DNA of 52,703 nt from Fonticula alba ATCC 38817 (lineage: Eukaryota; Protista; Nucleariida), in NCBI GenBank assembly GCA_000388065.2, contig KB932201.1, one strand, 5' to 3'. This document shows, in pieces, positions 19,168 through 44,484 of the stretch; position 1 is the stretch's first letter; each line of letters begins with the position of its first letter. A program made the translations under genes and the position numbers. The notes beneath the pieces are model-generated. The model was not told where the DNA came from. It saw only the letters and a list, made by a program, of their open reading frames with translations, and made no database searches.

Positions 19168-22100
19168 ATGCCTGGGTCCAACGTGCCCCGGCGGCCAGCT
19201 GAGATTGCCAACCTTGCCACTCAGCGCGGCCGGCCTCTCCGCCCGGAGGCGGCGGCGGCGACGGCAGTAGCAGCAGCAGCAGCAGCAGCAGCGACAATCC
19301 TCGATGGCCAGACTGGGGGCCCCCTCCCGGTGAATGCCCCAGCTACGGCCGCCACAGCCACCACTACCACCACCACCACCGCCCCTGCCAACACTCCCCT
19401 TGGCTGGGCAGATCAGCCGCTGGCCGGCTCGACCTCTTGTGAGTCGGTTCTCCCCCGGCGGCCATATCTTCCCCCCGGTCGGCCCCCTCACCAGCATAGG
19501 CATTCCCAGCAGTCCGAATCGTCTCCCCCTGCTCAGCAGCCCCGGCTCAGTCCGTCGACCATTGCCTCGGACCTTTTCCCCTTTTCCTTGCCGGAGTCGG
19601 CCGAGCGGTCCGCCTGTCGGCGGGTGACCGTCGACACTCGGCCTAGCCTACAGACCGATGCCCAGATCAGCGCACTCATTGAAGCCAGCTGGCCGACATC
19701 CACCCTTGGCCCAGCCCCCGAGCGGGGGGACGATCTGTATGTTGTTGCTGCCACTCGGTCCTCGCTGCTGTTGCATTGCTCCGGCATCCGCGGCGGGGCG
19801 CAGGGCTACTCCGTAGCGCCGGGCGACGTGGACGCAGTCAGCCCGGCTGCCCTGGCGCAGCCTTTCCTGATTCGCCTCTTCCCTGTGTCGGCCGACACTC
19901 CGCACCAGCTGGCCCTCGCGCAACTGGAGCACGGTGCGTCCCCTGTCTGCCCTCCATCTGACTGGCTTCCCCTGTTCTGACTTTTGCTCTGCATCTTCCC
20001 TCTGTCCTTTTTGCCTCGCTCCATCTCTTTTTTTTTGCCTCGCTTCGTCTCTTCTCTTGTCTCGCTTCGTCCCTTTTCTTGTCTCGCTTCGTCCCTTTTC
20101 TTGTCTCGCTTCGTCTCTTTTTGCATCTCCTTGTCCCCCTCTGTTTATCTTTGTCTCCATCTCCCCGTCTCCCCCTCCCTCCCCCCTCCAGAGTCCTCCA
20201 TCCTCTCTTATACCTCCGAGCGCGACATCCACCCGCCAGTGCTCGGCATTCTCCGGTACCCACCCCTCTCTTCATCGTGCACCATGCTCTTCTCGTCTCC
20301 TCCCTCGCCCCCCCCCCCTCCCCGTCCTTCCTTTCTGACACCCCCCCTCTCCTCTCCCCCGGGGCAATAGCGATCCCGTGTCGCCTGCGTTACTTTTCGC
20401 CGTGCCGCCGGCCACCTCTCGGTGGCAGTCTTTGACGTCGGTCATTCGCAAGCATCGGCTCCTCACCTCGCAGTTTCTCTCCCTCTCGGTGGCCATCACA
20501 ACCTGCATCGTGGCCCTGCACCTGGAGCGGGTTCGTGCATGCATTGCCTCCCCCTCGGCCCCCTAGCCAGCTTCCTCTGACCTTCTCACTCGCCCCTCCC
20601 CCCTCGACTGCCAGATCACACATCTCTCCCTCTGTCCCGACAACATTCTGGTGGCCTGCAACGATGGAACCCCGGTGGTCCGGCTCATTGGCTTCGAGAA
20701 TGCCTCCTTCATCACAAAGTCCGGGAACATCATCCCCACGGCCTGGCGCACGGCCGAGCATGCCCTGCCGTACATCGCCCCGGAGCAGGTGCTCCGCCTC
20801 GGGGCGCCAGTCAACTTCCAGGCCGATCTCTTTGCCCTGGGGCTGGTCTTTTTCAACATGCTGAGCGGTTGCTTGGCCTTCGTCCCGCCCCGGCTGCCGG
20901 CCTCCCTGTCCGAGGCATCCGTCTGTCTCCTGTGGATCAAGCTCCGCATGGACCAGTCCCCCTGTCCCATCCTCAGCCTGAGCCCGCTCGTGCCACCGAC
21001 GCTGGCTGCCATCGTGGAGACCCTGTCTCGTTGGCATCCCACCAATCGGTATCTCTCATCAATGGGTCTACTGGCGGATCTGTTCACCGCCCAGTGCATG
21101 GTCAAGAAGGATGGCTACGTGCATGATATGCAGCTTCGCCAAAGTGACTTCCCCCAGCATCTGATCCTTCCCTCGCCGCTGCTTGGCTGGGCCACGCTCG
21201 AGCCGATCCTGGCCTCGGTCTTCCTCCGGTCGGAGGAGACTCCTCGGCCTGCGGAATGCCGGTCGGTCCTGATCCACGGCCCGCCCGGGTCCGGCAAGTC
21301 CTCGATCTTGCGGGAGCTCACCCGACGCTACACGCCCACGTCCTACCTGCGCGCGGTTAGCCTGTGCACGGACACCGGCGGGCAGCCCTTTGGCCCGCTG
21401 CTCAGCGCCATCAATGGCATCCTCTCGGAGTTCCTCCACCGTCCGACGGAGGAGCTGTCCCAGCTCAGCCTGCGCCTATCGCTGATGTTGTCCTCCGATG
21501 TGCAATTCCTCAGCCGGCATATTCCCATGCTGGATCGGATCTTGCAAATTGGCAACGCCCTGTCCGGCGACCGGGACTCTGGCAGTCGGCCGGGCACCCC
21601 GGGGCCGGCTCCCCCGACGTCTGGCTCGCCCGCGGCCCCGGACTCCGGGCCTCCCAGGCCCGGGGGGCCAGCCTCCCCTTCCAAACCCCCGGGCATGGGC
21701 GACGAGCCGGTCGACTTCACGCCCGAGGCCCTGTCCACCCAGTCGCACGTGGTGTGCCAGTGTCCGGAGTTTCTCTTCGCCGCGCCGGAGTACTCCATCC
21801 CCTGCACGACGACACACTGCTCGCTGATGTTCATGAAGCGCAGTGACCAGGGGAAGGCCTGCTGCGATGGGAAGACGTGTCCCTTCTGCACGCTGACGCT
21901 GGCCGACATGGCCATCCTGCCGAATGGTGCTGCCTGCCCTGCGCTGACCGGGACACCGCCGCTTCTGGCCGGTGTGTCCACGTCCAGTCCCTTCTCCCAT
22001 TTGCTGTCCGCCGCCTCGCAATCACCGATTGCCTTTGGCCGGTGTTTGTCGCGACTCCTGCGAGCCATCGTCACAGCCGAGCTGCCGGTGGTCATCGCCT

Positions 22101-25100
22101 TTGATGACTTCCATCTGGCCGACACCGCAACCCGGTGCTTTGTTCATTCCTCCGTTCGCATGCAGCTGTGCGTGGCTCCCCCCCCCCCAACACCACCTTC
22201 GCTCTCCTCCATTCAGTTTCTCTAACCGACTTCTGCTTTCCTCTGTCTCCTTCGCCTTCTCTTTCTCTTTCTTCCCTCCCTTCCCCCCCCTCTGTTGTAG
22301 CTTCAACTGGGTGACCTTCATCGTGACCGCCTCCTCTTCTGAAGCCAACAACCCCGTGTGGCTGGACCCTGCCAAGGAGGCCGCCAGTCTTGGCACTGGC
22401 GCCGCGGCTGATGTTCATCCAGGCGCCAACCTGCCGCCACTTGTCCTGCAGATCGCCACTCAGCCCATTTCGCAGGCGGCATTGTCGGCGCATCTGTCGA
22501 GCGTCATGAGATTCGATCCTGCCGATGCTGAGTATCTGGCCGAACGGGTGTGTTTTATTTTGCCACCTCCCTCTTCTCCCCTCACATGCGCATGCTTCCA
22601 AGCGTGTGATGTCCTGTCTCCGTCCCAATATCGCCATCTATGCTTGATCGTCTGACCGTGTCGCTGATATCTCCGTGACTCCATCCCCCCCCCCCCCCCC
22701 CACGTCTGAACTCCAGTCACCTTCTCACCCCCCCCCCCCCCCCCTTCTCCGCTCGCTAGCTTCTTGTCCAAAGCTCCAACAACCATCGGCTGCTACAGCT
22801 GCAGCTCCGATGCCTGTGGTCCTGTGGTGTCATCAAGCCCGACATGGCCACCAAAGCCTGGCACCTGAACCGCGAGCAGCTTGCATCGTGCCCCCTCTTT
22901 GCGAAGCTCCATAATACTGAACCCGGGTCAGGTGCCCCCTCTCCGGCTCCAGTGCCGCCGGAAGCCGGCTCTACTCCGACCCCGGCCCCGGCCCCGGCCC
23001 CGGCCCCGGCCCCGGCCCCAGCCCCGGCCCCGGGCACGGCTCCATCCCAGGAGGACGAGCGATACACCACCGCCATCGTGTCCTTACTGCGACTGATGCC
23101 AAAGCCAACCGTGGAGTTGCTCTACATGTGTTCCTTCCTCAGTGTTCCCTTCCACCTGGGACAAGTGAGCGTCCTGACGGGGCTTTCTTCCATGTGCCAC
23201 CTGGACATTTTGCAGCCGGCCATCGATGTGGGGTTGATTTTCGCCGAGCGACCGACCCTCCAAGCGCGCACCAGCCCCGGGGTGCTGCACTCGACCAGCA
23301 GCGGCTGGCGACTGGCCCCGGGAGTGCTGGCCGCCGCGCCGCTGGTTCTGGACCGGCGAGCGCGTTACATCATCAACCATCGCCTGGTGTTGCGCTTTGC
23401 CCTGAACCGCCAGGCACCAGCGGTCGTGCCGCAGGTCCTGCGCATTTTGGCTCTGGCTCGGACGCCGCAGGTGGCCTGCCCATTGGTGGCCATGCAGCTG
23501 GCGCACATCCTGCACCAATACGCTGGCGAGGCCATCGGCCGGATGGATCTCCAACTGGCGGGCAGCCTGCTACGGTGTGGGCTTGGGCTGCTTCCTTCGG
23601 CCCCGACCCAACGCTGGGGCCCGCACTTCTACCGGGTGTCGTATAACATCCACCTGGATGCGGCGAATCTCTTCTCGCAGATGTCCCTCACGGACGAGGC
23701 CCTGCACCTGCAGCAGACGCTCCGCGAGCATGTGCGCTCAGACCTGGACCGAGTACGTTGAGCTTGCTTTTTCTTTCCCCTTTTCCCTTCCTTGGGTATG
23801 CATCGAATTGGCACATGCCGGGCTGCCTGCTGACCTCCGTGTGTTTCGTCGGTCCATGTGTGTGTGTGTGTGTGCGTGTGTGTGTGTGTGTGTGTGCGTG
23901 TGTGCGCCTCCGCTTCGCACCTAGATCGCCGTTGTTTCTTCCCAAGCCTTCCTGCTCGGGCGCCTTGATCGTGTGGACGAGATCCTGGAGGTTTGCTCAT
24001 CGACCCTGCTGCAGTGTGGCATTCCGCAGCAGTTCTTGCTGCGCGGCGCGGCCATCGAATCGCCGGACACCCTGTTCCAGCTGATGCGTGTTCGAGCCCT
24101 GCATGTTGATCGGCTGATCGGGTTTGTCGGCGGGCCCCAGTCGCTTCTGCATCTCCCCCGAATGACCAGCCCCTACCATCTGCTGCTGATGGAGGTGCTC
24201 TTCCATGTGCGTCCTGCTTCACATGCGCCCCCTCATTCCTGCCTCGCTGCCTGGGGCCGCCCCCTCTGCTCTGGGCCTCCTGGCGTGTCCTGCCTCTGAC
24301 TCTTTCCTCCTCCCCCTCCTGCCCGTGCTCTCTTCGCCACCAGCTATACCTCTCCCTCTTCAGCTCCAACATGTCGTATCTGCTGAAGTTGACTGTCTTG
24401 AAGATGGTCGAAACAAGCATCGTCTTCGGGAATTGCGAGTTCTCCGCCTTCGGCTACGTCCTCTTCGGCATCCGGCTGACGACCTTCAAGTCCCGGACGT
24501 GTCCCTTCGAGTTGGGCCGGGTGCGCAAGCCTACTTTTGCGTTTGGTGGACCTCCTGTCTTCTTTCTCTCTCTTTCTCTCTCGTTCCCTCGCCCCCCTCC
24601 GCTTTTCCCTTTGTCTTTGTTGACATGGGGCATCTTTATCTTGCTCCTCCCCCACCCCACCCCTCCTCGCTCCATGCGCGACCACGCGGCAATACCAGTC
24701 CGCGGTTGTCCTGGCCAATCAGTTCGACAACTCGCTGGTTAGCTCGCGCACCTTCATGACTTTTGGTTCGTGTATCAGTTGGCGTCGCGGGTCGCCGCAC
24801 ATGGGCATCTACTACTTGGGCCTGGCGGCGGAGATGGCGCGCGATCACGAGGACGTGCCCTTCCTCTTTGGCGCAATGACCTTCCTCATATGCGACTCGG
24901 TACTGCTCGGGCGCTCGTTGTCCGAGGTGTTGGACCTGATTTTCCGCATGGATGACATGATCCTCCTCCTGCGTACGCGCCCCCCCTCCCCCTTTCCCTC
25001 CCCTTCGCTCGCCGGTGCCCTTTGTTCGCCTTTGCCCCCCCCCCCCTCCCCCCCGGCCATGTCCAGATATTGACCATTAGCGCGGTGTCTTTTTTGAGCA

Positions 25101-28100
25101 GCCCGTGCCAGTCAGCGCGTTTTCATCGAGTACTTCGAGTTCCTCCACACGCTGACCGGGTCCACCACGGCGGTGGACTATTTGCCGGTTTTCTTCGATT
25201 CCTTCTTTTCCAGCCCAGGCGGCGACTCGGAGGATGATGCCGATTGGGGCAGCAATCCCAGTCGCCCGGGGTCCTCAGATGGTATCAGCAGTGTGCCTGG
25301 CGGCCCGACCGAAGCCGTTGCCTGGGAGCTGTCTTTCAAATCGATGGCGGCCTCCGAGGCCGGGACCACAGCCGCCGCCGGTCGGGCAAGCCCGGCTCGC
25401 TCTCCCCGGCCGAGTGTCCGGCTCCCTTCTTCCGATCCAGCCAGTCCCACCGGCAGTCTGCCCGATGATCCGGCCGGCTCGGTGGTCCCTGCAGCATACT
25501 CTCCCCAGTGGCAGGCCATCTACAACATGTTCCTGGTTCAGCCGCTGCCCGTGTCAACGGAGTTGCCGGTGTCAAAGCTGTCGGCATCGGCCGATTCCTG
25601 CACGGCTCCCTTCGAAGGCCTGACGCTGGGTGTGGGGCTGGTGCCTCCCTCGGCTCCTGGCCCCGGTCCCAGCCCCGGCCCCTCGGCGGGTCCCGTCCCG
25701 GGATCGGCCTCGGCCTCGGCCTCGGCCTCGATCTCCTCCGGCTTTGGGTCGGTCTCTCCGCCCGGGTCGTCGTCCTCCGGGTCCCCTTCGCCGCCGGGGT
25801 CGTCGTCCGGCTTCTGGGGCACCGGGTTGGACCACCTCGCCGGTAGCAACCCCAGCCTGACCAATACCATTGACGATTTGTCCAGGCAGGCTACCCTCCC
25901 CTCGGCCCTGCGCACCTCGGACTTGGTTATGACGCGGCTCTTCCTGTGTCTGGTGGCGGCGCTGCTGTTCGACGATTACCGCCACTGGCGCCGGCACATG
26001 GATTCCCTGCGGTCGGTGATCATCTTCCGGTCGATGACCCTGTCCGGGACGTGCGTCTGTGTCTTCGCGGCGCAGTACATGGTGGAGATCGTCGAGCGGG
26101 GCCTGGTCGCGGCCGGCTCGGAGGAGGCGCGCCTCTTCCAGGCCAACATCGCTTGGTATACGGAGGTCATCCGGACCCTCTCCCTGACTAATGGCTACTT
26201 TTTGTCCCTCTACCTCATGGTGGAGGCCGAGGGCTTGCGCCTTTCCGGGCAGTGTGCGTCCTTGCCTCGTGTGCATCCCCGCCTCATGTGCATCCCCTTT
26301 TTCTCCCTTCGCCCCCCCGACCCTCGCCCGTTGTTCGGTCTCTCTGACCTTTCGATGGGGGGAAAATGATGACGATGATGCCGGTACACACGCGTGCCTC
26401 TCTCCTTCTCCCTCTCCCTCTCCCTCTCCCTCTCCCTCTCCCTCTCCCCCTCTATCCCTTCCCTCCTGCCCCCCTACACAGGCCCTCTGGACACGTACAT
26501 CAAGGCTCTCGCCCACGCACGAGACATCAACCCCTTCTTCGCGGGCTTGGTGTGTCAACGCGTGTGCTCGCTGCTGGCCCGGCAGGAACAGATCAACACC
26601 CCGCTCCTATCGCAGGCCATCCTGAGCTGCATCCAGTGTGCGTACTTTGGGGGTGTTTGGCTTGCCTTCCTCTTCTGCATTCCCCCCTCCCCCTCCCCCC
26701 CAGCACATGGGCATCCTTGGAACTGACACGGTCTCCCATGCATTCTCCTCTCCTGCTCTGGCGGGTCGACATGCACTCAGACTACTCCAACTGGGGTGCC
26801 GTCGGGTGTGCCCGACATGTGCGGGCCCAGTACGAGTCCTTCATCCCGGAGTCCGACTCGGTTCTCTTTGGCGACTCTTCGCTGGGTGGCTCGGGGCTGG
26901 CCGGGCCGTCACCGCATCACCCCGCGGCTGCCACCAACAACCCCTTTGGCAGCTTTGGCCAGCTCTCCCCGCGGTCACCGCCGCCGGGTGGGAGCGTCGT
27001 GCCGCCGGGCAGCCCGCCGTCCGGCCTGCGGAGTGGCTCCTTCAGGCGCCGGTGCCGGCGCCTCCTCCCGCCGAATCATCCTCGGCGGCAGTTTTCCTTC
27101 TACTCGCCGCACCATTGGCCGCTCCTGGCGCCGGAGAACAGTGGCAGTCTCTTCGTCCGGCCGGTGCACTTGGCCCAGCCCGGCGATCAACTGGCCGACT
27201 CGCCGGACTTTGCTCTCAGTCGTCCATCGGTCAACTTCCCGGTGCCGGCCGCGGGCCTGGGAGATCACCAAGCCTGGCGGGTGGCCCGGCCGCGCAGCCG
27301 CCCGCAGGACTTCCCCCGGCAGCCATCGCCGCCTCTTCCCGCGGATGGGCGTCTGGGCATCCAAGACATGATGTCCACCTTCAGTGCACAAACGGCCGCC
27401 GCGGCCAGTGCCATGACCACGCACGAGGGGGTCCCCCCCTTGACGGCTGCCGTTGCTGCCATGGCCCTTGCTGGCACCCCTGGCAATGGGAGCCCCATGC
27501 TGTCGGGAATTTGCCCACCCGCCTCCGGGGGGGGGGCCTCCTCGCCGCTGGACTCGCCGCCTACTTACCCGGAGGATGACATGGCCCTTCGGTCCTTCCG
27601 CACGGTGCGCCCCTTGCTGCCAGAGGGGCTGGCATCGTTTGACCGGGTGCCGGGCTCGCCAGTGGCGCCGGCCGCCCCGGCCCCAACGGCCGCGTCCATT
27701 GTCCCGCCAATCTCGCCGATTCCCCCTCCCATGGGGCCGACGTCGGACGCCTCGCCCCCGCCCGAGGCCTTTTCGGCGGAGGACTTCTCCCTGGCGCACC
27801 TCCTGGAGGTGGACCCGGGGATCAGCCTGCTGTTGGATTCGGCGGTTTGCGGATTGGTGGGAAACCCCATTGCCGAGGTGGCCGAGTTGCTCTTCTATGA
27901 CCCGAATGTCCAGCGTTTTTCCTTCCCCTCACAGCGCCACGCCCAGGCCGGCCCCAGCAGTGGCCTGGGTTCCAAGCTCCTCCATCCGGACGCGGCCCCC
28001 ACCGCGGCCCTTTCTGCCGTGGCCGGGGATGCCTCCACCACACCGCCGGCTCCGGAGCACCGCAGCCGCCCGGCCATTCACCTGTCAGACACTTCGCCCT

Positions 28101-30961
28101 ACACCACGCCCTCCCCCTCGCCGCCTCGGCCGGAGTTGGTGTTCCCCCGGATGCCGGCCCCTCCGCGAGCGCAGGTGCCTCTTGCTTCGCCGCCTTCGCC
28201 GCTGAGGCCGCCTCCCCCGGCGCCACCCTTGCCACCTCCCTCGGGCGGCCGGGACATCCTCCAGGACCCTGGGATCAATCGCAGCGAGGCAGCCTCCAGC
28301 CCGGTCGGCGGGGGGGGCGCCTCATTGCTTGGTGCTCGGCGGGCATCTCTCTCGGATGGCATGGTGTCGTTGCTTCCGCTGCACCGGGTGGCGTCGGCCC
28401 CCTCCTCGCTAGCGGCGGCGGCTGCCGCCTCGGCGAAGATCGACCAGCCCACGCCCGCGGCCTTCGACACCGGGGTGCCCCTGTCGGCCACGGCCAGTCC
28501 ATCGCTCCCCGGGGGCATGTCCCGGGAGGCTGACTTCTCGACGGTGGCGGCCTGTGAGCCAGGTGCCCCGGTTGGTGGGATCTCGGCCCCGGCCATGCTC
28601 CAGCCGCTGGACATGTCCCTGCACTTTCAAACCGCCATGAGCTTCGCCGAGGAGCAGGACTCCGGCCGACTGCTGACCCTGCTGATGGATGCCCTCCTGG
28701 CCCAGACCCATGCGCAGAAGGGGGTTGTCCTGTTGGAGCGTGGTGCCCAGCTTCTGGTGGAGCTCCTGGTCACCCAGGGCCCCGGGGTGTCGCGGACGTA
28801 TGATCGCCCACGCTTGGCGGACTTTCGCCGGGTGGCCGCCAGCTCGGTGGTCAACTACGTGCGCTGCACCCAGGAGAGCATTTGGTTCTCGGACATCCTG
28901 GCCGAGAGTCCGCTGGCCATGGACCGGTATGTCCAGCGTCACCAGGTGTCCTCGGTCATTTGTGTGCCGCTGCTGGCTTCCCGGCGGCTGCTGGGGCTCG
29001 TGTATCTGGAGCTCAATCACCCGGGGATGGCCTTCCGGGCCGAGCACTTCCGCTTGGCGTCCTTCCTGTGTGGCCACGCGGCGGTGGCCATCCGCAATGC
29101 CCTCTCGCTGTCCGAGTTGCAGGAGCGTGTCCAGCGCCAGGCCCGGCAGCTGGAGGAGAAGGACCGCGAAATTGAGGCCCTTCGCTCGCGGCTGCAGGAC
29201 GGCGCGGTGGAACGCACCCGCCTGGAGGAGGAACTCCAATCGGCCAAGTCCCATGCGCTGCAGAATTCCCTCTTCAAGACCCGGTATTTGGCCAACATCA
29301 GCCACGACATCCGGACCCCCATGAATGCGGTGCTCGGTTTGGCGCAGCTTTTGGAGTCCCTGGACTTGAATCCCGTGCAAAAGAGCTACGTCGACATGAT
29401 CCAACTGCAGGCCTCCTCGCTGCTGGGCCTGATCAATGACATCCTGGATCACAGTCGCATCGAGGCGGGTCTGGTCCAGCTGAACCGGGTGCGCTTCCGG
29501 GTGAGCGACCTCCTGAACCATGTGGCCACATTGCTGCGGGTGCATGCCGACCAGGGTGGCAATACCATCCTGGTGTCCATCGGTGCGGATGTGCCGCCGG
29601 TCATCCTGGAAGATCTCCCCTGTCTGCGGCAGGTCCTGGTCAACCTCGGGAGCAATGCCAACAAATTCACCAAGGCCGGCACCATCACCCTCGGGGTGGC
29701 CGTGCACTCGGCCACGCCCAGCGGTCTGGAGCTGCTATTCAGTGTCCGGGATACCGGGTGCGGCATTCCGGAGTCCTGTTTGACCAGCATCTTTGCCCCC
29801 TTCACGCAGGTCCGCCAAAGTGACTACACCCCGGCCGAAGCGGCGGCCATGGAATCGGCCACCGGCGATGGCGGCGCCGGGGCCGATGTCGCCGGTGTCG
29901 CTGCCCATGACACCGGGGCGGGGGCTCCTGTGGATGCCGGCCCCGAGGGGGCGGGAGCCCCGGCCAGCCAGGCCTCGCTGATCCCGGCCCCGCTGGTCGA
30001 CCCGTCGGACATCACCTACAGCCACGCTGGCACGGGGCTTGGGCTGAGCATTTGCGAGAGCTCGGTCAAGCTGATGGGCGGCCGGATTTGGGTCGAGTCG
30101 ACCCTGCGCCACGGGTCGGTCTTCTACTTCATCATCCCGACACAGCGCCTGACGGCCGAGGAGTATGAGCTCTCGTCGCTGATTGATCCGGCGTCCCCGC
30201 TGCCGACACAGCACTTCGACCGGACGGAGTCCCTGTCGGACTTGATCTTCGATGGAGGGGTCCGGCCGTCTCTCGGCGGCGAGGGGCCCATCGGCCAGGC
30301 TGGCCCGGATGCGGTGGTCATTCCTGCCAGCAGCGAGTCGGTGTCAGCCAGTGAGTCCCCCCCGGCGGCGCTGGTGTCCGATGCCTGCCAAGGGTGCGAC
30401 GACTCGCCGGTGCCGGCCGTTGCCAGTGTCGTCGCCACCGCCATTGCGGGCTCCGGCACAGGGCCCGGTGTGGCCGCTGCGGCGACCGGCGCCAGCTCCT
30501 CGGTGCCCGCCTCGCCCGGGTCCCTGTCGATCTTGGTGGTGGAGGACAATCCGGTCAACTCGCTGGTCATTCGGAAGATGCTCGGCCTGCTGGGGTTCCA
30601 TGATGTGACCTCGGCCGCCAATGGCAAGGCAGCGCTGGATGTCCTGGCGCAGCGATCCTTCAGCCTGATCCTGATGGATGTCCAGATGCCGGTGATGAAT
30701 GGGCTGGACGCGACGCGCATGATCCGGGCGCCGGAATCCAAGCTCATGGCTCCGGAGCGCCGGCCGACCATCATTGCCCTGACCGCGTCGGCGATGCCCA
30801 GCGAAAAGGAGCAGTGCTTCGCCGCCGGCATGGACGACTTCCTCAGCAAGCCCATCCGCATCACTGACGTCCAGAATGTCATCCAACATTGGTTCCCAGA
30901 CCTGATTCCCCCCCCTCAGCCGGCTTCTTCCTTGTCTCAGGGCGACAAGCCGGCTGCCTGA
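19168..30961 (+). CDS. Hybrid sensor histidine kinase, S/T-kinase-like + AAA + helical region + GAF + HisKA + HATPase_c + REC (fungal group X / Chk1-Mak2/3-like architecture), about 3334 aa. Exons 19168-19933, 20192-20255, 20371-20530, 20615-22167, 22301-22547, 22760-23752, 23925-24206, 24344-24520, 24699-24972, 25102-26253, 26482-26637, 26781-30961
   Basis: The 12 exons sum to 10005 nt, a multiple of 3, with consistent phases. Motifs: ITHLSLCPDNILV / VRLIGFENA / LPYIAPEQ / DLFALG (kinase-like); LIHGPPGSGKS and VIAFDDFHLAD (P-loop ATPase); YSNWGA; GAF (SVVNYVRCTQES...SVICVPLL...GLVYLE); LANISHDIRTPMNAVLG (H-box); QVLVNLGSNANKFT, VRDTGCGI, GTGLGLSI (N, G1, G2 boxes); VVEDNPVN...LILMDVQMPVMNG...IIALTA...DFLSKP (receiver). 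The start codon is uncertain because of the upstream gap. Confidence 0.92.
20030..20120. repeat. About 21-nt tandem repeat (cttgtctcgcttcgtcccttt-like) in intron 1 of the histidine kinase gene
   Basis: ctcgcttcgtc core repeated 4 times at roughly 21-22 nt spacing. Confidence 0.8.
22977..23032 (+). repeat. (CCGGCC)n coding repeat giving a (Pro-Ala)n linker in the histidine kinase
   Basis: Translates in frame as TPAPAPAPAPAPAPAPAPG. Confidence 0.85.
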
Positions 30962-31556: not shown

Positions 31557-32525
31557 TTAGAACTTCGAGGGCATCGGGTTGAGGATGTTCTCCATTGTAC
31601 GCATGGTGGGCAGGGCCGCGCGGTCGGTGAAGAGAATGCCATCCATATGGTCGATCTCGTGGCACACAACCGCCGCGGGGAGACCCGTCAGGGTGGCCGA
31701 CACCGGGACCAGGTCCAAGTTGACGGCGTCCAGACGCACGGCATCCGGCCGGGCCACCATGGCCGCCATGCCGGGAACCGAGAGGCAGCCCTCAATGTTG
31801 TAGGTGACATGCGTCAGGGAGGTCGGCGTGACGGTGGGGTTCAGCAGGAAGACCGGCTCGATGCGAGCCGGGGAATTGCGCGGAGTGATGGAGGTCCGCC
31901 GGGAGGAGGCAGAGGGGCCGCCGCCCAGGGGCCCGGTCTCCTTCAGGGACAGGGGCTTGATCAGGCGCTCGTGGAAGACCGGGAGCTCCAGGTTCTGGCG
32001 GCTGTTGTGATAGTTGATGTGGAAGCACCGAATCGGCATGCCCACCTGCACGGCCGAGATGGCGGTCAAGTGGAAGTCCTCCATGTCGTAGTCGAGCTTG
32101 AATTTCATGGCGTGCACCGCACGCACCATGTCCTCCGACTGGTAGAAGGTCGTATCCACCGGGAGGCTGCGCTGGCGGAGAAGCGGATGGCCGATGGTCA
32201 GGCTGCGCGGCTCCTTGAGCGTCAGGGTGTAGAAGCCCAGATCATCCGGCGTCAGCTCGGAGTACATGTCCTGCAGGCGCTTCATCTTCTGCTGGAAAGG
32301 CCCGGGGTACTTGTTTGGCGAGCGCTCGAACTCGAAGAGGGCCCGGTCAATGCGCAGAGACACCTCCTCCAGGCGCTCGATGATTTCGCGCCCCTCGGAA
32401 GAGGCGCCAAGCTTCAGCGCATCCTGGTAGGCCAGCGTGCGCACCGACCCCCGGAGGCCGATGTTGGCGTACAGGGCGAAGCGCAGGCGGCTGGCCACGG
32501 AGAGGGGCGTGCTGAGGGTGGACAT
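31557..32525 (-). CDS. PDF: Peptide deformylase (organellar type) with long N-terminal extension and atypical motif 1; intronless, 322 aa
   Basis: IGHPLLRQRSLPV (GDPxLR-like), FLLNP, EGCLSVPG (motif 2), CHEIDHMDGILFTDR (motif 3, HExxH). Motif 1 reads LTAISAVQVG. The Ser/Arg-rich, acid-free N-terminus is consistent with a mitochondrial transit peptide. Confidence 0.9.
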   Translation of the reverse strand: MSTLSTPLSVASRLRFALYANIGLRGSVRTLAYQDALKLGASSEGREIIERLEEVSLRIDRALFEFERSPNKYPGPFQQKMKRLQDMYSELTPDDLGFYTLTLKEPRSLTIGHPLLRQRSLPVDTTFYQSEDMVRAVHAMKFKLDYDMEDFHLTAISAVQVGMPIRCFHINYHNSRQNLELPVFHERLIKPLSLKETGPLGGGPSASSRRTSITPRNSPARIEPVFLLNPTVTPTSLTHVTYNIEGCLSVPGMAAMVARPDAVRLDAVNLDLVPVSATLTGLPAAVVCHEIDHMDGILFTDRAALPTMRTMENILNPMPSKF

Positions 32526-36121: not shown

Positions 36122-36362
36122 CACTCTCGCTCTCTCAGTTGGTCGCTCGGTCGGTGGCTCCCCCTGCCTCCCTTCCCCCTCTTCGCTCCCGTTTCCAGCG
36201 TCCTGGCTACAGCAGCCGCGCCCGGCATACGTGCTTGTGCGCGTGCGCGCGCGCGTTCGCCCCCGGCCCCGTCCTATACCACCCCTCCTTTCGCCNNNNN
36301 NNNNNNNNNNNNNNNNNNNNNNNNNNNNNNNNNNNNNNNNNNCCTAGCCATCCGCCTCCCCG

Positions 36363-37541
36363 ATGCCTACTCTGAATCCACGCCAGTGGCTGTCGCCCAA
36401 CAACATGCCGGAGCTACAGGCCAGCCCTCTGGCCAATGGCATGCTCAGGTCCGATGTGGCGCTCATTTTCTATCTCGCCGTGCCGGCGGTCTTCCTGGGC
36501 CTGTACATGAGCCGGCTGCGACATGAGCCGATCCGCACCCGAGGCGTCTTGTCGCACTTGATCTCCAACATCTCCGGCGGTCTGACCGTGGCCGCGGTCT
36601 TGGCCTCTCTTCACCCCATCAGCTGCCATTTTCCCTTCATCTTCATCAACTCCATGCCCACGCTGTGGGTGCTGGTGCGTGCCCATCGCCCGGAGGCCGG
36701 CCTGCCGCCCTGCCGACATCGCCGACGCATCTTGCCTTGCCTTGCCTTTGGAGCGCCACCCGCCGGCCACTCTTCGGCACCCGCTGCCAGGCGCTTTTCG
36801 CGCGCCACGGGCCCGGGAGATGCCCGCGACCTCCCGGTCGGTCGGTGCCCTGATAGCGGCAGTGAGTCGGGAGCAGCGGGGCCGGAGAGGGGGAGGCGGG
36901 GGAGGCCTGTTCAGACGGTTTGCGAATTTGGCCTTTTACTCGCCCCACAAGCCGCCAGTTAACCCGAGCCCGAGAATAGCCCCTCCTCCTGCGCGGGCTC
37001 TACCTCTACGCGGACCACGAGTTCCATGCGCTTACATTTAAGCTGCAGCATCTCCTGCCGCAGGACCGGATCTATTCCTCGGCCCGGCGGAAGAATGTCG
37101 ACCACTCGTCCGATACATTGGCCTTCACACGGCAATCCAGCGTACACGACATCAAGCTGCACCAGCTCCCGGGACCGGGGTATGGCATGGACGGCATGGC
37201 CACCTCGCAGGCCACCGAGGGAGCGGCCGGGGCCGGCGGCCCGCCCATCAACCCGGCCCCCTCCAGCGGGTCCATGGCGATCATCATGCGCGAGAAGGCC
37301 CTGCTGCACAAGGGGTCGGCCGGCGGGTCGGCCGCCGATGGGGGCTTCCACACGATGACCTCCTCCTCGTCCTCCTGCGGCAGCCAGCACTTCGAGGGGG
37401 ACTCCTCGGGCTTGACCTTCCTGGACTCGAGCAACATCTCGGAAACCGAGTGCACCCTGGCACCCCTGGATCGCCCTGGGCGCCGGGAGGGGGACCACTA
37501 CCGCCGCGGGTCCAGCCACACAACCAGCAGCATCGGCACCA

Positions 37542-37582
<41 letters not shown>

Positions 37583-39836
37583 CCGGATGACGATGACGAT
37601 GACGACGAGCCGAGCACCCCGGGCCCCGGGGCCCTGGGGCCGTGTGGCCCGGGACCGGTGGTCGGCGGCGCCTCGAGGCCCCGTGGCAGCGGGGCCGCCG
37701 GCGCGGCCTTCACCCTCGGCCGGGGCGAGACCCTGTCCAATGGCGAGCCCTCGCGCAATTCCAGCATCCTGGTGCAGCTTCGCCGCGCGGACAAGCTCCG
37801 GCGCATGGTGGCCCCCGGCTGGCCGCAGATGGTCATCTTCCTCCTGGCGGTGGCGCTCAACGTCAGCCTGACTTACGCCCTGAGCCCGGTCTTTCCCGGG
37901 CGCTCGGGCCGGCCCCGGTACACCGACGATGGGGGCGGCTGCTCGGCCTACATGCTGCCGGTGCTGGCCATCTCGGCCGGCATCCAGGCCATCTTCGGCG
38001 TGGTGATGATTTTCCTGCTGTGGACACGCAAGGACGCCTATCGCATCCGCACGGAACTCGCCGTATGTGCCTGGGGACTCTGTTGCCGGCATCGGGGTGG
38101 CCCTTGCTTTTCCTTTGGGTGCCCTGGTGTTGTGGGCGGGGGAGGCATTTGATGACGCCCCAAGCGTGTCACCGGTGGATTGGTCCGCCGGGGTGTCCTT
38201 CACTTTGTCCCTCCCCTTGTGGTGTTGCCTCTCCCCGCCGGCTCGTACGCTTCCTGACATGCCCTGCGTCCCTGTGGGATTTTTCCCCCTCTGCACCGCC
38301 CCCCCCCCCCGTGAAGGTCTTCGGCTTCTTTGCCACGGGGGGCTTTTTTGTCTTCGTCCTGGCGGCCCTGTATCAGGACCCGGTCTTCTCGGCGGCCGCC
38401 ATGCACACCGTGTGTGCATGCATCTCCGGATCGACCCTCTGGACGAATGTCTTCCCCTATGCGCTGTCCTTCACCAAGTTCTTCCGGCGCCTGACGTACG
38501 TGTGCCCGTGCTGTGGCGGTGATGGGGCCGGGGGTCTGGCCTATGAGTGGAGTGGGCGTCCAGACGAGGAGCCAGAAGCAGGGGAGGCCGGCCCGAGCCC
38601 TTCGCCGTGCCCCACGGCGAAGGGCGACCCCCAGACCTGGCGGTGAGGACTGGCAAGCGCCAGGGCCCGGGAGGATATCGATCTCGTGTCGGCATAGTGC
38701 ATGCGCGCGCGCACACACATTTAGATGGATAGATGTGGATATCTACCGATCCAAAAGACACCCTTTCAGATGCCCTCACATATCCTGGCTACTCGGCTCT
38801 CTTAGCCCCGGCCTCCTGCCCCGGCCGCCCTTTGCCGCGCGCTCTTGTCGGCCTCCGGGTGACGGCAGGCATGGGGAGCCGAGGCGAGGGGATGCGAGGG
38901 GCTGGGCGACGCGGCCCTTCATGTAATAACACATACACACTCCCATGACCCACCTTCATCCCCACTCCCTCTCTCTCTCTCTCTCCCTCCCGGTGTCTGC
39001 CTCGCCTCCGCCCTGTCTCTCTACCACCGGGCCGTGCCCGGGCGCATATCATCCCTTGCACAGCTTCTTCGCGGATGAGGCCCGGCGTCAGCGGGCCTAC
39101 AACGCCAGCCGGCCGCCCAGCAGCCGGCCGCCCGGCGAGCAATCCAACTACACCCTTGCCAGCGGGGCGACCACTACCACTACCACCACCACTGCCCGGC
39201 AGTTGAGCTCGGCCGACAGCCAGTCATTTGGCGGAGGCCTGGCTCCGGACGTCGTGGATGGCGGCCACTATCCGCTGGCATCGGCCCTGGCCGACCTGCC
39301 GGAGGGCCTCGGCCCCGGGAGTCCGATCAGTCCGCAGTACTATCTCGGGCCATTGAACGACGCCATGATGGCCCCGGCCGATGCCCTGGGCGGCGGTGGC
39401 CCCGGCGGCATGGGAGCAACGGCGGGCTCGCATTCGGACTCGTCGAACCTGGTGGAATTCTCCGGCGACATGAAGAGATTCACCTTCTCCATGTTCGAGC
39501 GCCACTCCTCGCCCGAGGGGCTGGTGGGCTTCTTCAATTTCTGCACCCAATCCTTCAACTCCGAGCAGATGTACTTCTGGAAGCGCGAGACGCACTACCG
39601 GAAGTCCTTCTCGGAGAAGTTTGTGACCAGCCGCAAGTTCCTGGACCGGAAAACCTACTATATGGTGCGTGGCCTCGGCCCTTGTGGGCATCCAGAAATG
39701 GTGTGGCGGGTGAGCTGTGAGAGATGGAAGAGGGATGGAATGAGAGGAATGAAATGCGAGAGATGGAATGAGAGGAATGAAATGCGAGAGATGGAATGCG
39801 AGAGATGGAATGAGAGAGATGGAATGAGAGAGATGA

Positions 39837-39867
<31 letters not shown>

Positions 39868-42221
39868 TTTACAGAAAGTGAGGGGGAGACCACGGCCGTC
39901 CTGTGGCCCTCTTCTCAGAGGGCCTCCATGCACGGGTCTGCTACGGGCAAATTGGCCAGTGCCTGTGGGGGGGGGCCTTCTGTAACCAGCAAAAACACCT
40001 CTGCCATGGTCAAAACCACCCTACACGTCCCTGATACTCATAGCACGCTCGCATACGCCCACCATGCTCCAAGGTTGAGCGCTACAAGGAGGCCCTGCAG
40101 ATCATCCTGGTGTTCATCCTGCCTGGCGCCACACTTTAACTGAACATCGATCACGCGGCCCGGGCCAAGATCATCGAATGCATCCGGGAGATCCCGCCCC
40201 CGGCCGAAACGCCGGAACTGGCGGACTTCATCCAGAAGGTCTTCATCAAAATCGACGAGGCCATGTCCCTGCCAGATGCCGGCACAGGCGGCCCCGGGCA
40301 CGGGCAGGGTGCCGCACACCACCGGTACTCGGCACGCCGGGCCCCCTGGTCCAAGGCCCTGAGCACCTTCAGCGGGGCCGGACGCCGGCGCCAGAGCGCC
40401 ACGCCTTCTTACCGTCGAGGCTCGGCCACCGGGCCTGGCACCCTGGGCCCGGCCCATGCAGGCCCGTCCGAAGATCCGGAAGCCCGCATCGGTGGCCCCG
40501 GGGTGGTCGACGGCGGTGCCGGGGCCCGCGGCATGGCGCCCCTGCATGGGGGCGGGGCCGGTCCTGCCGGGCGCCTGCCAACCGGGCGCATGGTCGGCGA
40601 TCTGGCCGTCATCAATAGCGCGTCACCGATCCTCGGCACCGCCGACTCAAGCCTCCACGCATCGGGGGGCTCCTCGCAGACCAGCATGTCCAGCACCAGC
40701 GGCACGGTCAACCCGCCCGCTGGCAAGGCCGCGGTCTTGGTGGCCGAGGGTCTGCACTCGGCCAAGCAGCCGCCCAGTCCAAGCCCCCAGTCGCCGGGGC
40801 TCGGCTCGGACGCCGTCACCCTGCCGTACCCGGCGATGCCACCGATGGTGGCCGGCCACTCGCCGGCACAGCATAGCGCACATGGCGGGTCGCCGCCGGG
40901 CTCGCCGCCGGCCCCGGCCTCCCTCGTGGGCCCGGGCTGTGCCTCGGCCTCAGCCACGGCCTCCCCCCGCCTGGACCCCGCGCCAATGGCCCCGGCCGCC
41001 GCGCACCCGCCACCGCGATACCTGGAGCCGCTGCATGACCTGATGCTGTACCGGCTCTTTGGGGACCTTCGATATGAAATTGGCAACCAGCTGTCGCACC
41101 TGCTCTGTGCCTGGGGCGCCAGCGAGGGCAAGCGCGAGGTCGAGGATGCCATGATCCGCAAAGAGCAGCACGACTGGCGGGCCAAGCAAAAGCAGCTGGA
41201 GCGCGCCCGGCGGGCTTCCACCGTGGCCGATCTCGGCGGCTTGGGCTCGGCCCCCGGGGCGATGGTGGTGCTGCAGAGCCCGCCCCCGGCGCCGCTGTCC
41301 CCGAGCATGCGACGGATCCGGTCTTCGGAGTCGGTGCTGGTCGGCCTGCCAGGCGTCCGGCCGCCACCGCACGCCACCGGCTCGGCAGCTGGCAGCCGGC
41401 AATTCCACCCCCATCCCCACTCGCATTACCACCACCACCACCACCACCACCACCACTCGCCGGCGGATCTGGGCAGCACCTTTGGCGACCATCGGAGTAT
41501 TGGGCTCCATGCCTCGCACTCGGGCAGCTTCTTCGACCCGGCGGCCGATGGCGCCCCCACGGCCATGGGCGGCTACGCCGAGGCCGGCTCGCCCTTTGAC
41601 ATGATGCGGTCCGATGGGACGGATGGCGCGGAGCACCGCGGCGAGCCCGGGCCCATCTTCGCCTCGCTCGTGGCCACCGGCAGCCCCATCGACATCGAGT
41701 TCACCCTGGCCAACCCCACCGCCACCGGCGGGCTGATGGCTCCCAGCCCGAGGACCATGGCTTCGTCTTCCTTCGGCATGTATGCCCCGGCCGCACCGGC
41801 AGACCCTCCCCCCGGCCCACGGTCGCCCGGGGAGGCCGGCCACCCTGGCCGAGCTTTCCAGGCAGATGTCCTGCCAGGCACCGCTGGACATCCTGCAGGT
41901 CGACGCGGCTCCGCCACCACCCCGGGAGTTGCCGGCGGCGAGAGCACCTCAGCGGATAACTTGCCGGCGCTCATGCGTCCCGGCCAGGACTTCGGTCAGG
42001 ACGGCCAGCACACCGGCGACAGCCCGCCCGGATCGGACAACTACACCACCATGAACCGCCTGGCCTCGGCGTCGGCTGAACTTTTGACCATCTCCCAGTT
42101 TAACCCCCCTCTCCGGCGAACCAGCCACTTGTCGATCATGGACTTTGAGCAGTCGACAGTGCCCACGGCGGCCACGGCTTCGGGGCAAGTGTCAGGAAAT
42201 GGCTCCCCTCGTGTGGCTTGA
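36363..42221 (+). CDS. 7TM-RGS fusion protein with in-frame TAA at 40137-40139. Exons 36363-36674, 36980-38062, 38317-38495, 39064-39664, 40074-42221
   Basis: Seven hydrophobic segments (VALIFYLAVPAVFLGLYM; VLSHLISNISGGLTVAAVL; FIFINSMPTLWVLPLLLRGLYLY; MVIFLLAVALNVSLTYAL; MLPVLAISAGIQAIFGVVMIFLLW; VFGFFATGGFFVFVLAALY; AMHTVCACISGSTLWTNVFPYAL), with HEPIRTRG after TM1 and KDAYRIRTELA before TM6. RGS box: LVGFFNFCTQSFNSEQMYFWKRETHY...EALQIILVFILPGATL*LNIDHAARAKII. The ATG lies 20 nt after a gap, so the true start may differ. Confidence 0.82.
39716..39866. repeat. Degenerate GAGAGATGGAAT(GA/GC) minisatellite plus (GA)n in intron 4 of the 7TM-RGS gene
   Basis: Repeated gagagatggaatg / gaggaatgaaatgc units read directly. 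Confidence 0.8.
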
Positions 42222-44484
42222 CGATGCGGTAGTGACCGTCGCACTTGGCTGGCACCTCTCCCGCTCTATCCTCCGTTCCGATGCCTCTTTCGGCAAGGGG
42301 CGGGCGAGGGGAGGGGGGGAGGGGGGGGGGGGGCTGGGCGTGTCATATAAAGGCTTCAAACAACTATCGAGCGCGGTATGACTCAACTAAACATTCCATC
42401 CCTTCTCCCCTCCGCCCTTCCACACACACCCACACATACATACACATACATACACGCGGCTACAAGGCCACAAGGCCACATTGCCACATTGCCAGCCACC
42501 AGACCTTGTGATAATACATGCGGCCGATTTTTCCATCCTACCCATGCGCCGGAAGGGGCTTTGGAGAGGCAAGCCGCAGGACATCCGCTGGTCGCAGGAA
42601 GAGCATCGCGGGCGGGCTCCGGGGTGCTGTACCACAGGACATGAGCAGAGGGGCTGGCCGTCGTATTAAAAAAAAAACAGGGACACGCGAAGACGTACCA
42701 TGCAGGCCAAGAGAGGAGGATGGAAAAAGATTTCATCGGCACATGGTGAGGGCAGCAGGTGACAGGGCATTCGCGGGGCGGGCCGGCGTTCGAGGCACCT
42801 GTCCAGGAGGCTGCATGCCTGACCTGGTCGAGTGTCTTTGGATCAGCCACCGAGGTGGTGAATCATGGACACTCCGGAGCGTAGCTAGGTAGGCCAACCC
42901 CCTGGCTCGGCCCGGTTGCGCGCGATTGCCACCGGCAGGAACGACCCGACGGCTCGGGGGGCGTGGGCTTCGGAGAGGGGCTGCAGATATCCCGGCCGGA
43001 CACGGCCGACCAAGCGCACGTTGCGGCAGGTCGTGCCCTTTGTGCACACTGGCACATGCAATGTATATCGAAGTCCCGCGCCCCATCCTGGGAGAAGTGC
43101 CCCCGGCCACAGAGCCGGCATGCTCGAAATGCGGGCGTCTGGTACCGAGCTCACCCCCTTTCGATTGCCGCGCATTCCGACAGACCCCTGGCAAGCGGGG
43201 CCACCCCGGTCCCGGGAGAGGGCATCGGGCCGGCGGCCGGCCGGCCTCCTTTCCTCGGGGAGTCACCTCCCCGGGGCGCATGGATTTGCATGGGCGCTGC
43301 TGTCCCACGACCAGCAGCATGGACACCTACACCCAAACGCATCGGGGAAGAGTGGCCCTCATTCCCCCGAGAGGGCTGTGCACTCAAGACGCCTCGCCAG
43401 GCGGGCGGGCGTGCTTCTGCCAGATGGCCTGACCAGGGGGCACCTCCATGCCAAGGCCGGATAGTGCATGCTCGTGGACAGCCCCACCAGCACGGCCCTG
43501 CCTTCGGGCCATCGCAACTCCCGTGCATCTGAGCATCTGATGCTTACGCCTTGCCAAAGGGGAGGGCTCATGGATGGGCGTTCCCCCGCTCGAGGATCAC
43601 GCATTCTGTCGGGTGTCCCGAGGCCCCTCCGGGCCCAGGGTGCCGGATCCCGTCGAGCCGGCCCGCGGGCCTCCGGTTCGCCAGCAGCGACGGGCATCTG
43701 GCTGAGACAGCCGAGTCACGCAGGGTGCCCCGGCCCGCCCCCGGTATTCCATCCTACGTGGGGATGACGAACCAGCCAAACAATGGGGTGATGGGGCACC
43801 TTGCCATTGTGCGGGCAATGGGGTGCGGGAGCAGCCCGGCAGGGGACCTCCCCAGGGGTACCTTTGCAGCGAGAGGCCCCTTGGCTGGCAAGGATGGAGG
43901 TGCCAGGGAATGTCGCCGCAAGGGCCATCCTCCGGCTTAGGGCCATATCCCGGAAGCAGGGCAGCAGCAAAGCAACTTGGCGCGGGCAGTCACCCGCACA
44001 GCGGCCTGACAATCCACTCGGCTGGATGCTGATGCTGCAACCTTCGAAGGATGGGGTCGCGCAGAATGGCTGTGTCAAAGCCAGGGGCCATCCAACATCT
44101 GGCAAGATCATGGAGCGGCCGGCTCCCCTCCCGAGTTCGGGCACACCCCGAAGGAAGGACCGGGACAGGACAGCACCACCTGGCCGGGCCTAAGCGAGGA
44201 GTTCATCGGTCTGGGAGAGTTTCCCGGTGGTCCGTCAGCTGCTCCGGGGGATTGTGCGTGGCGGTCGGGCCGCCAAAGCCTGAGTCCCGGTCCAGGAGTG
44301 GTTTCAGAAGAACTGAGGACCGGCAGTCAGGTCCTCAAGCAGCAAGGCTTTTTTTTTCGCACAGACGCGGGCATGCGTCCCGGGGATTGAAGACTTCCAG
44401 CCGGAGTGCGCTGGTGAAATAGGTGCGCTGCTGGAGGGAGGGAGAGAGAGGAGGGAGGGAGGGAGAGAGAGAAAGAGAGAGGAG

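Follow-up and report, generated by a model that had tools for sequence, protein, structure and literature searches.

Does the in-frame TAA that interrupts a predicted receptor gene of Fonticula alba belong to the organism, or only to the sequence deposited for it? The stop lies in the contig KB932201.1 of strain ATCC 38817 (Opisthokonta, Rotosphaerida), of which a stretch of 52,703 nucleotides, called the window here, was analysed. It falls inside an RGS-like domain, at a position where a reading made from the sequence alone had expected GAA or CAA. That sequence-only reading had left four options: a base-call error, a nonsense allele of the sequenced strain, programmed readthrough yielding a short GAP-less and a long GAP-active isoform, and U-to-C RNA editing.

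As far as the deposited sequence is concerned, the stop is where it had been claimed to be. Both the window letters and their translation place TAA at 40137-40139 on the plus strand, followed by C at 40140; the gene, at 36363-42221 (+), has five exons, and the stop comes 22 codons after the start of the last one. The letters around it read CCTGGCGCCACACTT TAA CTGAACATCGATCAC, and the translation of 40074-42221 runs through VERYKEALQIILVFILPGATL, the stop and then LNIDHAARAKIIECIRE, continuing without interruption to the next stop, a TGA at 42219-42221. Comparison of window positions 21557-42525 with scaffold KB932201.1 of the GenBank assembly GCA_000388065.2 gave no mismatch over 20,969 bases, the T at 40137 included, indicating that this T was already in the deposited record and was not added in the analysis. 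A preprint gives this accession for the F. alba assembly (10.1101/2023.12.07.570557). The window carries ten runs of N, each between 10 and 897 bases long, which marks the scaffold as one of draft quality. A minus-strand open reading frame also overlaps the site, and a change from T to G at 40137 alters its product from Leu to Phe.

It had further been claimed that TAA is a true stop in four other genes of the window; this holds for at least one of them, the peptide deformylase gene at 31557-32525 (-). This single-exon gene encodes 322 residues with a PF01327 match and ends in TAA, and an identical gene was found on a Logan contig of another run. TAA is thus an ordinary stop in the F. alba genome.

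To rebuild the gene model, all three frames of the plus strand were combined with the splice signals, the exon joins being predicted from the letters (Table 1). All four introns of the five-exon model are GT-AG and all phases fit, giving 1440 codons with the TAA position counted.

Table 1. Predicted exons and other features of the interrupted gene (window coordinates)
Feature	Position	Strand	Boundaries and basis	Content
Exon 1	36363-36674	+	ATG start; 104 codons; donor GTGCGT at 36675; GenBank gene also starts at 36363	TM-like segments 1 and 2 and start of 3 (hydropathy peaks)
Exon 2	36980-38062	+	361 codons; AG acceptor 36978-36979, phase 0; donor GTATGT at 38063	TM-like segments 4 and 5 (hydropathy), preceded by a long loop of low complexity with poly-Gly and poly-Asp
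(CGG)12 repeat	37546-37582		Tandem-repeat scan	Within exon 2
Exon 3	38317-38495	+	AG acceptor 38315-38316; donor GTACGT at 38496; phase fits exon 4	TM-like segments 6 and 7 (hydropathy)
Exon 4	39064-39664	+	CAG acceptor 39061-39063; donor GTGCGT at 39665	Low-complexity linker, then N-terminal half of RGS-like domain, about 39470-39625 (marginal Pfam/PDB matches)
Intron 4	39665-40073	+	409 bases, GT..AG, phase 0; splice predicted from sequence	
Exon 5	40074-42221	+	Translation; ends TGA; GenBank gene also ends at 42221	C-terminal half of RGS-like domain, 40074 to about 40262, motif ..FILPGATL[E]LNIDH..
Exon 5 tail		+	Up to TGA	About 650 low-complexity residues

Several features of the locus were observed beside the exons themselves. 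A run of N at 36296-36342 lies 20 bases upstream of the ATG, so that the promoter and the 5' UTR are incomplete in the assembly. Intron 4 carries, at 39719-39867, about 4.7 copies of a 28-base tandem unit (GAGAGATGGAATGAGAGAGATGAAATGC), itself built from a 14-base sub-unit, and then (GA)13; the contigs of both DNA runs described below break at this tandem array.

The hydropathy of the upstream exons suggests a membrane protein. When exons 1-3 were scanned exon by exon on the Kyte-Doolittle scale, about six clear hydrophobic segments were seen; of the remaining TM-like segments one spans the junction of exons 1 and 2 and one is a weaker seventh, which makes about seven in all, and a loop of about 250 low-complexity residues separates the third from the fourth. 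None of the pieces searched matched a GPCR family in Pfam.

The RGS-like domain was recognized through marginal matches of exon pieces that were searched separately. The exon-4 piece matched the Pfam RGS family PF00615 over its N-terminal half only (E=0.023; 15.5 bits, below the cut-off of 23.9), and its best PDB matches were the RGS domains of RGS7 (E=0.035), then RGS9 and RGS14, with E values up to 0.98. The C-terminal pieces from exon 5, searched alone, had no match in Pfam, PDB or the ESM Atlas. No orthologue came out of an exhaustive HMMER search with exon 4 against a library of 1.84 billion proteins; it returned two matches, one a repeat protein and the other a short fragment of bacterial appearance, and both were judged spurious. 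Word searches with the 693 residues that follow the stop, used whole or cut to residues 1-60, found no relatives within a length limit of 381-1213 residues, a range that excludes the 1430-residue product annotated in GenBank. A degenerate pattern across the site, written to match either base, hit none of the metagenome contigs. Overall, the predicted exons have the look of an ordinary 7TM-RGS receptor that ends in a long tail of low complexity.

Within this domain the stop occupies what we take to be the position of the Glu in E126-V127-N128 of RGS4 (..KEVNLD..), in the alpha5-alpha6 loop; no significant alignment of the C-terminal half of the domain was obtained that would confirm this correspondence. 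RGS4 N128 contacts switch I of G-alpha.

We then compared the window with public runs over 36400-42300, using two DNA runs (X1 and X5) and two RNA-seq runs (X18 and X22). The base evidence consists of Logan contigs and not of raw reads, and such contigs lose rare variants. X1, a run of 2012 with a depth of about 140-160x that is flagged as a possible source sample, reads G at 40137 at a depth of 142.5/142.5 in its contigs. The X1 contig that covers the site is 1616 bases long and unbroken over 39878-41415, and the change from T to G at 40137 is its sole difference from the window; over 5.9 kb the X1 contigs differ from the window by none or one position each, with this change as the single difference listed. 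X5, a run of 2025 from another study, also reads G (5.88/5.88 in its contigs), at a thin depth of about 6. No contig bearing T at 40137 was present among those of X1 and X5, within the limit that contigs lose rare variants. In addition, X1 retains a minor branch at 38172-38231 as separate 60-base records with a depth of 6 against 120.7; since a branch of 6x is kept elsewhere while the contig across 40137 is unbroken, this argues against a T allele of appreciable frequency in X1.

With G at 40137 the codon changes from TAA to GAA (Glu), the residue that had been expected from the family, and the motif runs ..GATL-E-L-N-I-D-H.., which resembles the E-V-N-L-D of RGS4. The check that had been suggested, a look for G or C in the reads at this base, therefore gave G in two runs from two studies, at the level of contigs, and points to an error of the assembly.

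Five further positions (38179, 40858, 40979, 40997 and 41285) separate X5 from the window, and X5 hence represents another allele or strain. One of these SNPs lies in intron 2; the other four lie in exon 5, where three are synonymous and one exchanges His for Arg. Few as they are, the three synonymous changes among four are consistent with a constrained coding frame on either side of the site. Public data thus hold a second F. alba allele or strain, with about 0.1% divergence across the locus.

A separate irregularity was seen further downstream, where an X1 contig passes from 41257 straight to 41804: 546 bases are missing, 7 other letters stand between the two sides, and the shorter side has only 24 letters. 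The place lies in the Pro/His-rich tail, close to the (ACC)n poly-His stretch at 41428-41456, and repeated or low-complexity sequence is the most likely cause of such an artefact, with a length variant as the lesser option.

These results indicate that the stop belongs to the deposited consensus and not to the main genomic sequence of the organism. The base-call option of the sequence-only reading is the one that the contigs of both DNA runs support, and we consider it very probable that the T at 40137 is a single-base consensus error in GCA_000388065.2, or at most a variant too rare for contigs, and that the gene is intact. With G as the genomic base, the codon would be GAA, and no stop would interrupt the last exon between 40074 and its terminal TGA (42219-42221). 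The five exons, together about 1440 codons, would then most likely encode an intact 7TM-RGS protein, with roughly seven membrane segments, a long disordered tail and, between them, a cytoplasmic RGS-like domain whose coding sequence intron 4 divides. Canonical splice signals and open frames can be read directly from the letters; splicing as modelled, a working GAP function of the RGS-like domain and a behaviour of the protein like that of other receptor-RGS fusions are inferred.

The GenBank annotation of the gene appears to have been affected by the false stop. The annotated gene spans exactly 36363-42221, and its product of 1430 residues, with no Pfam hit on record, is ten codons shorter than the 1440-codon model although the start and the stop are the same. 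An annotation ten codons shorter must bypass the TAA through other splice sites. An enumeration of GT/GC-AG introns that would give a 1430-residue product found no solution with a single intron and 1430 solutions with two introns, so that no particular structure stood out. Probably, the annotated exon structure was bent to avoid the false TAA and the RGS domain was damaged thereby. The HMMER search with exon 4 missed the annotated protein, a sign that exon 4 may be absent from it or be read there in a different frame.

The alternative that survives best, unlikely as we judge it to be, is a real nonsense allele, minor or specific to a lineage, present in the DNA preparation or sub-clone that dominated the assembly consensus, while the main population (X1) and other isolates (X5) would carry GAA. 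One receptor-RGS paralogue would simply have lost its function in this variant, and no special mechanism would be involved. The T does stand in the deposited GenBank record, contigs cannot show the absence of rare variants, and three more runs from the same sample as X1 (X2-X4) contain fewer of the sampled words (0.86-0.87); a T allele is possible there. However, X1 equals the window over the covered 5.9 kb save at 40137, where G stands at full contig depth with no second branch, although the same run does keep its 6x branch at 38172-38231; the independent study reads G too. The nonsense allele proposed for the sequenced strain is thus not supported by the contigs, from which a rare T could have escaped.

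Slightly less probable still is that there is no functional RGS gene here at all, the stop being part of non-coding or pseudogenic DNA in which high GC keeps the frames open. The family support is weak, with a Pfam RGS match below the cut-off over the N-terminal half only; neither the word searches nor the exon-4 HMMER search found relatives, and the annotated product has no Pfam hit. Moreover, the two RNA-seq runs X18 and X22, which carry the species label and of which 1.0-1.9 billion letters were read, gave no read on the 5.9-kb gene; either the gene is not expressed in those conditions or the runs contain few sequences of the organism. However, every join of the five-exon model keeps the phase and uses canonical GT-AG sites, from an ATG to a stop that the GenBank annotation also uses, and about seven hydrophobic segments lie upstream of the domain. 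RGS comes out on top in Pfam as well as in PDB, the SNPs of X5 are mostly synonymous, and with G the reading frame is without any defect.

We regard it as very improbable that a genomic TAA is bypassed, whether by readthrough in the TAA-C context, by U-to-C editing or by an acceptor that skips the codon, so as to give a short GAP-less and a long GAP-active isoform. What invites this explanation is the C after the TAA, the long open frame downstream in the window and the conserved-looking LNID motif directly after the codon. All three routes require a genomic T, however, and two read sets show G; the stop is likewise absent from the second strain or allele, in which X5 reads GAA. An acceptor downstream of the codon would, furthermore, cost exon 5 its first 22 codons, all of them within the RGS-like domain. 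Programmed readthrough with two isoforms finds no support, as there is no stop in the X1 or X5 contigs to be read through, and U-to-C editing fares no better, as the DNA itself reads G. Since readthrough, editing and a nonsense allele each need a genomic T and the read sets are without it, none of them is needed. A T allele present in part of the ATCC 38817 culture or DNA preparation, leading to a truncated receptor or to partial TAA-C readthrough with GAP-less and GAP-active forms side by side, is equally improbable.

We therefore return to the consensus error as the preferred explanation. There is no biological novelty in this gene, and nothing in it calls for a new mechanism. The practical value of the analysis is the correction of a wrong base in KB932201.1, at window position 40137, which breaks a 7TM-RGS gene; surveys of G-protein signalling in Holomycota that use this proteome could miss or misread a receptor-RGS gene.

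At 21557-30961 (+) of the window lies another annotated gene, a very large one whose product has 3334 residues and which runs past the 20,969-base locus that was compared with GenBank. Its last exon (26366-30958) contains GAF, HisKA, HATPase_c and response-regulator receiver domains, and an open reading frame upstream of that exon, at 20651-22222, matches AAA_16. This gene looks like a fungal-style hybrid histidine kinase; a look-up of the exact product of the histidine-kinase open reading frame had no hit.

Proteins that combine a 7TM region with an RGS domain are known from Arabidopsis (AtRGS1), Naegleria fowleri (Nf 7TM RGS1-4) and Trichomonas (PMC9283941), where they work as receptor-linked GAPs for G-alpha subunits; the GAP activity of the Naegleria RGS domains was assayed with BODIPY-GTP (PMC9283941). 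The F. alba gene is similar to them in its predicted layout, with about seven N-terminal hydrophobic segments followed by a C-terminal RGS-like domain. In contrast to them, it has a loop of about 250 residues between TM-like segments 3 and 4 and a tail of some 650 low-complexity residues, and its RGS similarity is marginal, for pieces searched apart, with no orthologue recovered. Programmed stop-codon readthrough is resembled only by the appearance of the deposited sequence, in which TAA-C is followed by a long, conserved-looking open frame; the stop that defines such a case is absent from the reads and is not conserved in X5, and the locus is therefore not a case of it. A close likeness is that to the consensus errors of draft assemblies that produce false internal stops. 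Here as there, a single substitution stands in a gapped scaffold; deep reads of the probable source sample contradict it, as does a second study, and the corrected codon brings back the residue expected from the family, with no notable difference between this locus and such errors.
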